64,000 nt of DNA, taken from Trichosphaerium sp. ATCC 40318. Taxonomy: Eukaryota > Protista > Tubulinea. Positions 33,251-36,200 of the stretch are shown piece by piece (the stretch's first letter is position 1; every line of letters begins with the position of its first letter). The notes beneath the pieces are model-generated. The model was given only the letters and a program-made list of their open reading frames with translations, did no database searches and was not told the DNA's origin. Location of the stretch: contig JALMLS010000466.1 in NCBI GenBank assembly GCA_038496445.1, positions 186,001 to 250,000 on the forward strand, in the 5' to 3' direction. The position numbers were made by a program, and so were the translations under genes.

Positions 33251-36200
33251 ATGCGCATTGTAAATAGAGTTCGGTCTGGCTTCGCTTCAAATACTAATGT
33301 ACGCCAAAGTGGTTCTCGCGGAGTTCCCACGCGTAATCGATCGTCTACACATCTTTCAGTGTTATTGGCAGCAACTGCCGTTGGAACAACTCTATCCAGT
33401 TTAGTACGTACCGCAAAAACGCCTAAAACTTACTGTGGGATAGTTTTCTAGTGCCGTAGCCGAAGACGATGAAAATGAGGATGTACGTAATGTAAAAAGT
33501 AGCAATATCATATATACGCATTATCTAACGCGTCTAGTTGCTATTGGCAATAGATCAGGGGACTTCATCATCTCGAGTAATTTTGTACAACAAAGAACTC
33601 TCAAGCATAGCCTCACATCAAGTACAATTCCCCTTGGAATATCCACAGCGAGAGTACGCGAAAAACTTTTCGTAAAACAAAACATGACCTCTTTTTCTTT
33701 AGCTTTGTAGAAATAGACGCAAACATACTCTATAATACTGTAAATGAATGCTTAGAGAGTGCTATGGCGAATATATCTTCTAAATCCTCAATTAAAGGTA
33801 CACAACAAGAAATAATTTTTTTGTACTTTTAATCGCATGTCGATTCTTTTTTTTCATGTATGGTATCTAAGACGCTCCTTTAGCAGTAGGAATTACAAAT
33901 CAAAGAGAAACTACGGTAATGTGGGACTCAAAAACAGGGGAGCCGTTATGTAAAGCAATTGCACGTCACTGAAATAACAAAGTAAACAACAATGCTTACG
34001 TTTACATAGGTTTGGATGGATGGGCGTACATCAAATATGGTCGATGATTTAAGTGCTTCTAAAGGCTCTAAAGATTACTACCGTGAAACAACAGGATTGC
34101 CCATTTCAACTTACTTTAGTGCTTTAAAGATAAAAGTACGCACTGTTTACGCCCAATTGTTGTTCATTCGTCTAATTAACAACCTTCTTGTAGTGGCTTG
34201 TAGAAAATTCGCCTATGGTTAGGGAAGCTATAAACCAAGGGCGTTGTATGTTTGGTACAGTTGATTCTTGGCTTATATGGGTACGTAGAAACAAAAACAA
34301 AACAAAGTAGCTCTCAAAAAGGTATGTATTTATTATTTATTTAGAAGCTCACTGGTGGCGTTAATGGTGGGATTCATGTTACAGATGTCACAAATGCGAG
34401 TCGTACAAACTTAATGACACTAAAAACTGGAGAATGGAATGAACAGATTTGCGCGTATGCGACATATAAAACCAAGTTCTCCTTAACACTTTGAGGTTAG
34501 CGACATCGGTGTCCCAACTGCAATTTTACCTGAGATTAAGAGTTCTTCTGAAGTTTATGGCCATGTTGCATCTGGTAGATTGGCTGGCGTTGCCATTAGT
34601 GGCGTACGATTGGACTTGATGTTTTAGCCTATTTTTAATCGTTTATTTAGTGTCTAGGCGATCAACAAGCTGCCATCGTTGGACACGGTTGTTTCCAACC
34701 TGGAGACACAAAGAACACGTACGGCACAGGGTGCTTTATGTTGTTCAACACAGGAAGCGATATTGTACTTTCAAATTCCGGATTGCTCTCTACTGCTTGC
34801 TACCAACTTGGTCCAGGTACGAGAGCTCTTGAACATCTCATGTACTCAAGATTTGCATAGATGAACCTATAAAGTATGCTCTGGAAGGGTCTATTGCAGT
34901 AGCAGGTGTTGGAGTTAGATGGTTGCGAGACAACCTCAAAATCATCACAGAGATATCACAAGTGAACAAACTGGCAGGATCTATACCAAACAATGAAGGT
35001 ACGCACCCGTTAAAGCCACCAAACACCATAGTTCAAGCGAGTAAAGAGAGCAGCCAAAAAAAGTTAAAACAAAAAAAAAGGGTCAACCAGGGAGTAGTCG
35101 GAATTGAGTTACGGCAACATGCCGTCCCGTGTATCAAACTAAATGTTTACTGCCACCTAAGTATTTCCAACTAACGTACAATGCATAGCATCAACCTCCG
35201 TAGAGGCATCTCACACATTAAACAAAGTACGAAGGGACTATTTCTGGTCCTCAGGCACCCACTTTCGCAGGATTCCCACCAAGGGATAATCGGCACCTCC
35301 GACCTTCCCAAATGTTATTATAACGACCTCCCGAAGGAGTCGTTCGTTTGTGAACATCTAAGCACAGGCTCCTGGTTGACCCAATTACGTTTCGTTGTTT
35401 TGCTATTTTTAAAGTCGACCTTTCATTAAACAGAAAAATTGTGGTTTTAAACGCTTGAGTATTGAATGGTCTATAGTGCAGCATAAAGCTTTTGACAATA
35501 TCTCTTATTTGAAAACTTTTGCGCTTTTTTTTTTGTTTTTTCGAAAATTTTTGTAGTTTGAATGGAAAACTTCCTTCCTCGTTAAAGAAACAACTCATCT
35601 ACCTATCAATTCTATAAAAAAGGGGTGCCGCGAGAAACACAACAGGAGTAAGCCCCGTTCTGTTGATTAGGTACTTCTGTTCACGGCTCAGAATATACCT
35701 GACTAATTACATAACTTTGCTATGATTACTTTCCGTCACAGTAACACCATGCGCTCCGCCCTAAAGGCATCTCAGCTAGCGCACTGCATACGAAATAATT
35801 AACATTTTCATGCCGACACTTTCTGCCAGAGTATCCGGGGACTTTACCCCAGAGCGTTTAATAATTGCCCACGCGATGCGTGGCAACTCGTTTGTGTGCT
35901 CCGTAGTAATTCTCTGTCTGTGTTACACCCCAGTGATGAGTTTAAAGCTATTTCTTTTAAGTATTCCTGCGAACTTCCTAATAATTTATTGTGGGAAAAA
36001 ATGACTTGTTTTTAACTTTATATCGGTAGATATTGTACTAATAGGGTTATAGATGTGATGTTTGTACCAGCCTTTGAAGGATTGTATGCACCATACTGGC
36101 GGGAAGATGCACGCGGCTTAATTATCGGATTGACTGGAAGGTTCGCTTTTTTTTTTTTCAACCGAAAAAAATCATCGAGATTTCAATGTTGAGGCTTACT

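Follow-up and report, generated by a model that had tools for sequence, protein, structure and literature searches.

Two RNA genes lie in tandem on the minus strand, both inside one intron of a plus-strand gene for glycerol kinase. (The window is the whole stretch of DNA that was analysed, 64 kb in length.) Sequence and predicted fold together confirm the genes as those for RNase MRP RNA and RNase P RNA. They are arranged head-to-tail, MRP then P, with 240 nt between them. The genes and the parts of the host that enclose them are as follows.

34861..34998, plus strand: glycerol kinase exon 5′ of the long intron (contig joints; phmmer against PDB, E 2e-8)
34999..36052, plus strand: GT..AG intron of 1054 nt, phase 1 (GTACGC...TATAG), which encloses both RNA genes on the opposite strand
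36053..36140, plus strand: glycerol kinase exon 3′ of the long intron (contig joints; Pfam FGGY_C; PDB, E 6e-9)
35622..35931, minus strand: RNase MRP RNA gene, about 310 nt (RF00030, P8 loop, terminal helix, contigs)
35080..35382, minus strand: RNase P RNA gene, 303 nt (RF00009, terminal helix, contigs, template-switch oligo)

The two RNAs and their host intron

The covariance models of Rfam 15 for both RNA families were scanned across the complete window at the gathering threshold. The nuclear RNase P model (RF00009) matches 35083-35379 on the minus strand with 120.6 bits (cut-off 28; E 4e-34), and the RNase MRP model (RF00030) matches 35636-35925 on the same strand with 111.5 bits (cut-off 50; E 2e-30). 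Both matches run over the full model (1-301 of 301 and 1-266 of 266, respectively), which upholds the identities proposed in the preliminary description. They are the sole Rfam matches at this threshold in the window. In clan competition between the P and MRP models, 35636-35925 was retained as MRP.

Individual elements agree with these assignments. In the P RNA, the Rfam alignment keeps both CR-I (GGGAAGGUCGGAG) and CR-V (CAAUUCCGACUAC). Its P4 helix reads GUCGGA/UCCGAC, as against the consensus GUCUGA/UCAGAC; both sides have changed, so the pairing is compensated. In the MRP RNA, AAAGUCCCCGGA and ACGGGGCUUAC fall with high posterior probability on the conserved mCR-I and mCR-V blocks of the model. 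At P8, the Rfam alignment shows GGCA-GAAAG-UGUC, whose GAAAG loop is of the form GARAR; a GARAR pentaloop on P8 is the signature that sets MRP RNA apart from P RNA (PMC4287351).

The ends of both RNAs are placed by terminal helices. In the minimum-energy fold of the P RNA, GGGUCAACCAGG (35382-35371) pairs with CCUGGUUGACCC (35091-35080) to form a perfect P1 helix of 12 bp; in the fold of the MRP RNA, the first seven bases (35931-35925) pair with 35628-35622. These predicted helices start and stop exactly at ends wider than those of the model matches, and the RNAs were therefore extended to 35382-35080 (P) and 35931-35622 (MRP). The same coordinates and spacing had been given in the preliminary description, and matches and helices agree with them.

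The host gene on the plus strand belongs to the FGGY carbohydrate kinase family and consists of many short exons, single ones of which match Pfam FGGY_N and FGGY_C. Among solved structures, the two exons that flank the long intron match only glycerol kinases (E 2e-8 and 6e-9). In the alignment with 6k78_A, the last residue of the upstream exon falls on residue 333 and the second residue of the downstream exon on residue 336; the Asp codon that is split by the intron, together with a Val, occupies residues 334 and 335. Because the flanking exons align to contiguous kinase residues, no coding exon is hidden in the 1054 nt between them. A word search with the exons for the glycerol kinase of relatives gave no matches, and in a representative search with a 54-aa exon as query all matches had at most 74% identity (the best full-length match was a fish glycerol kinase; three others came from bacterial glp operons).

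The intron itself is real, since the joint 34998|36053 occurs in multi-exon assembled transcript contigs from two public runs (X6 and X1) of different studies. The preliminary description had made its reading depend on the splicing of these two exons to one another, and that is what the contigs contain. Seven other introns of the gene have RNA support (86, 46, 47, 44, 71, 121, and 49 nt, all GT..AG). With a median of 49 nt and a range of 44-121 nt, they make the long intron about 20 times the median, where the earlier estimate had been about ten times the typical length.

Two further open reading frames were noted near the host gene, both on the minus strand. A single-exon frame of 228 aa (37292-37978) lies just downstream of glycerol kinase and has a weak match to the SPRY domain (E 0.002); its exact sequence is absent from the protein collection searched. 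Another, of 484 aa (39434-40888), has no Pfam family and no homologue in a word search.

Candidate promoter boxes, T-runs and transcripts

Each RNA gene has its own set of flanking signals, which are listed here in the direction of the minus strand.

35989..35996, minus strand: DUSE-like box of the MRP gene, TCCCACAA, -65 to -58 from the MRP RNA start
35948..35960, minus strand: TATA-like box of the MRP gene, TTAAAAGAAATAG, about -30 from the MRP RNA start
35931, minus strand: MRP RNA start, GGGG
35616..35621, minus strand: T6 run, terminator-like, directly after the MRP RNA terminal helix
35383..35615, minus strand: spacer from the MRP terminator to the P start, with the P RNA promoter boxes as its only content
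35439..35446, minus strand: DUSE-like box of the P gene, AACCACAA, -64 to -57 from the P RNA start
35403..35413, minus strand: TATA-like box of the P gene, TTTAAAAATAG, about -31 from the P RNA start
35382, minus strand: P RNA start, GGG
35071..35079, minus strand: T9 run, terminator-like, directly after the P RNA terminal helix

The claim that either gene has an upstream element and a T-run of its own is thus made good: a box pair and a T-run (T9 for P, T6 for MRP) were located for both. The two genes have a CCACAAT box in common, and the spacing of this box and the TATA-like box is near-identical (-64/-65 and -30/-31). Neither RNA, at about 310 nt each, contains a T4; the longest internal T-run in both is three.

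The upstream box by itself, taken as a 9-mer, shows no enrichment across the window, with 8 copies as against 5.2 +/- 2.4 in shuffles. The combination of the box with a TATA-like motif 33-36 nt later occurs three times in the 64 kb: before the P gene, before the MRP gene, and before a third small-RNA gene at 51641. This third gene (51641-52032, plus strand) has the box TCCCACAAT at 51641 and GTATAAAAAG 33 nt later; it has no Rfam family match at the gathering threshold. No tRNA gene was found anywhere in the window, which rules out a general Pol III gene cluster.

The RNA data are assembled contigs of public runs rather than raw reads. For MRP, contigs from three runs cover 35628-35922, 35627-35930, and 35640-35916; for P, contigs from three runs fall within 35126-35382. 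In all four runs the spacer at 35383..35615 is nearly bare of contigs, whereas the RNAs on both sides of it are covered. Run X2 contains a spliced host contig, and its coverage piles up on the two RNAs only; these two features identify the run as RNA. Together, the contigs support the production of discrete RNAs from both genes.

One contig also bears on the 5′ end of the P RNA. In run X6, the contig stops at 35382 and runs on into CCCGTACTCTGCGTTGATAC, which we take to be the 3′ part of the SMART template-switch oligo in reverse complement. The oligo abuts 35382, so an RNA on the minus strand has its 5′ end there or within about 3 nt. This end is either a start site or a processed end, between which a template-switch junction cannot distinguish.

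Transcription of the two genes

The layout recalls small-RNA genes of the social amoebae. In Dictyostelium, many such genes have the upstream element DUSE, [AT]CCCA[AT]AA, at about 63 nt (PMC3188802). Across Dictyostelia the element is found about 60 nt from the start, and some species have a variant with two Cs (PMC7919456). The P and MRP genes described here likewise have a C-rich box of 8 nt, some 60-65 nt before the start, and a T-run at the 3′ end, and the CC variant in AACCACAA matches the two-C form of some dictyostelid species. There are also differences: the box here is CCACAAT, one position off the consensus; the box here is always paired with a TATA-like box; and the composition of the genome, at about 38-40% GC, hints at a host that may not be a dictyostelid.

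In a simple model for the locus, P and MRP are two separate small-RNA transcription units with the external-promoter, U6-type layout of Pol III genes, set antisense in a spliced host intron. We consider this model very likely. The DUSE-like CCACAAT box at -64/-65 and the TATA-like box at -30/-31 would drive each gene separately. Transcription would begin at the GGG in the 5′ arm of the terminal helix, and would end at the T-run immediately past the 3′ arm. Each unit would then be organised as an external-promoter (U6-type) Pol III gene of the kind found in social amoebae. Meanwhile, transcription of the host pre-mRNA would cross both genes from the other side, and ordinary splicing would remove the entire cassette. 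The preliminary description had already proposed independent units antisense to the host, and the features now in hand (an upstream element, a TATA-like box and a T-run for each gene, discrete RNAs, and one spliced intron) all favour that proposal.

Which polymerase transcribes the units is a separate matter, and judged from the signals around the genes it would probably be Pol III. It is quite unlikely, though conceivable, that the units are independent and transcribed by Pol II, in the manner of Sm-class snRNA genes that share this upstream box. In Dictyostelium, Pol II and Pol III genes alike are associated with DUSE, and it is the T-run that is read as the sign of Pol III (PMC7919456), and the MRP RNA of Saccharomyces cerevisiae is not a Pol III product (PMC1635290). 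Pol II, however, sits poorly with a TATA-like box at -30, with T9 and T6 runs placed exactly at the RNA 3′ ends, and with the lack of any internal T4; and in most of the eukaryotes examined, Pol III makes both P and MRP RNA (PMC4287351, PMC1635290).

The number of transcripts has to be weighed as well. Both genes are on one strand and just 240 nt apart, so the MRP promoter might give rise to a single dicistronic MRP-P precursor from which both RNAs are cut out; the 5′ end captured by template switching might then be a processed end, and run X2 has a low-depth contig signal (2.7-35) in two bins of the spacer. Against such a precursor, a T6 run lies directly 3′ of MRP, and P has a box pair of its own, at the same -64/-31 spacing as in MRP. 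The 5′ end of the P RNA also coincides with the predicted +1, and in three runs contigs cover both RNAs but leave the spacer essentially empty. We regard a common precursor as very unlikely.

Processing of the RNAs from the intron of the host Pol II transcript, which their position might suggest by analogy with the RPR genes of insects and crustaceans (PMC4287351), can be dismissed almost with certainty: both RNAs lie opposite the host strand, so that the host pre-mRNA has only their complement; P and MRP each have promoter and terminator signals of their own; and it is this antisense orientation that refutes host dependence of the insect type.

If P and MRP are indeed separate antisense units, the polymerases on the two strands would meet head-on. 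Any interference of the RNA genes with glycerol kinase transcription is speculative; two runs contain host mRNA that is correctly spliced.

Precedents and origin of the arrangement

The abstract of a 2005 paper by Piccinelli reportedly describes a tandem arrangement of the P and MRP RNA genes of some protists. The same statement is made in a passage of a 2024 review (PMC10966300), with Piccinelli, Rosenblad and Samuelsson (2005) as its source. As far as that passage goes, the protist genes likewise adjoin on one strand, and the pair described here differs in that it is additionally nested, antisense, in an intron of glycerol kinase. The preliminary description had implied that linkage of P and MRP is new; on the strength of the review passage, it has already been published.

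Antisense nesting in an intron has a precedent in Drosophila, where the MRP RNA gene lies antisense within an intron of a protein-coding gene (Woodhams et al. 2007, PMC1796607). That gene, too, is of the Pol III type, with its own signals, and is both antisense and intronic (PMC1796607). It is a single gene, whereas here the P RNA gene shares the intron; the P RNA gene of Drosophila is located elsewhere, sense-oriented and driven by its host.

The intronic RNase P RNA genes of insects and crustaceans are in the sense orientation, have no Pol III signals, and depend on the promoter of the host, while insect MRP RNA genes retain Pol III signals (Manivannan et al. 2015, PMC4287351). The P RNA gene here resembles these P RNA genes in lying inside the intron of a Pol II gene, but it is antisense and has its own box pair and T-run. 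(The preliminary description had drawn this contrast with the sense-oriented, host-driven genes of insects, and PMC4287351 agrees with it.) Linkage in tandem thus has a precedent, and so has the antisense position of a Pol III ribozyme gene within an intron; a literature search found no report of P and MRP together in one intron of a protein gene.

How the pair came to lie here can be approached from the sequences. Global identity of the P and MRP RNAs is 54%, as against 50.4 +/- 1.4% for shuffled sequence. The two are old, diverged paralogs, and a recent duplication or gene conversion, of which nothing is visible, was rejected. One block of 19 nt in the P12-like hairpins (35195-35213 and 35756-35774, minus strand) is 84% alike, UGAGAUGCCU(C/U)UA(C/G)GG(A/C)GG, and so is more alike than the remainder of the two RNAs; it could be a common protein-binding site.

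Counted from the P terminator up to the upstream box of MRP, the cassette takes up 926 nt. The remaining intron sequence, 72 + 56 = 128 nt, is near the size of the ordinary introns in the glycerol kinase gene. Presumably, the cassette came secondarily into an ordinary short intron. The 128-nt remainder fits an intron that was once ordinary, and is silent on whether the two genes arrived jointly or had been linked all along. Insertion as a mobile element was considered and rejected: direct repeats flanking the cassette are absent, and a 10-nt AT-rich inverted pair (35060-35069 and 36010-36019) is within chance for the composition.

An older origin of the linkage can also be imagined, in which the MRP-P tandem has survived from the duplication that gave rise to MRP from P in an early eukaryote, both here and in the other protists with tandem genes. 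The glycerol kinase intron would in that case have expanded around an ancient pair of genes, or taken it up. We think such retention quite improbable.

A survey of linkage was made by scanning metagenomes for the pattern CR-I...CR-V. It returned 67 contigs, all of them confirmed as nuclear P RNA, of 35 distinct types; the upstream flank is at least 600 nt in 60 of the 68 P RNA genes. None of the 67 contigs has an MRP match beside its P RNA, at an Rfam cut-off below which divergent MRP RNAs may score, none contains close kin of the P RNA of the window, and in none is the P RNA gene flanked by exons of glycerol kinase. Linkage of P and MRP is thus uncommon among the sampled environmental eukaryotes with P RNAs of similar size, a sample that holds no relatives of the host.

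Two contigs of the survey contain two nuclear P RNA genes. In Ga0170475_106051329 (L053:241-940, plus strand) they are diverged and lie in tandem, about 100 nt apart. Scores are 128.4 and 113.4 bits, over the full model in both cases, and each gene scores better as P than as MRP; the contig thus contains a present-day P-P tandem duplication of a eukaryote. In Ga0137417_1329887 (L064) the two genes are inverted, at 1239-1539 (plus strand) and 6047-6344 (minus strand), about 4.5 kb apart.

These results leave the understanding of the origin of MRP RNA unchanged; tandem P and MRP genes in protists were, by the account in the review, reported in 2005. What they provide is a clean annotation of the RNase P/MRP RNA locus, down to mapped ends, promoter boxes, and terminators, in an amoeba-like protist that has been little studied, together with an added case in which both paralogous ribozyme genes lie antisense within a single host intron. 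Moreover, the locus lends itself, as a compact natural system, to the study of head-on traffic between Pol III and Pol II, and of the way in which small-RNA genes settle in the introns of a gene-dense genome.
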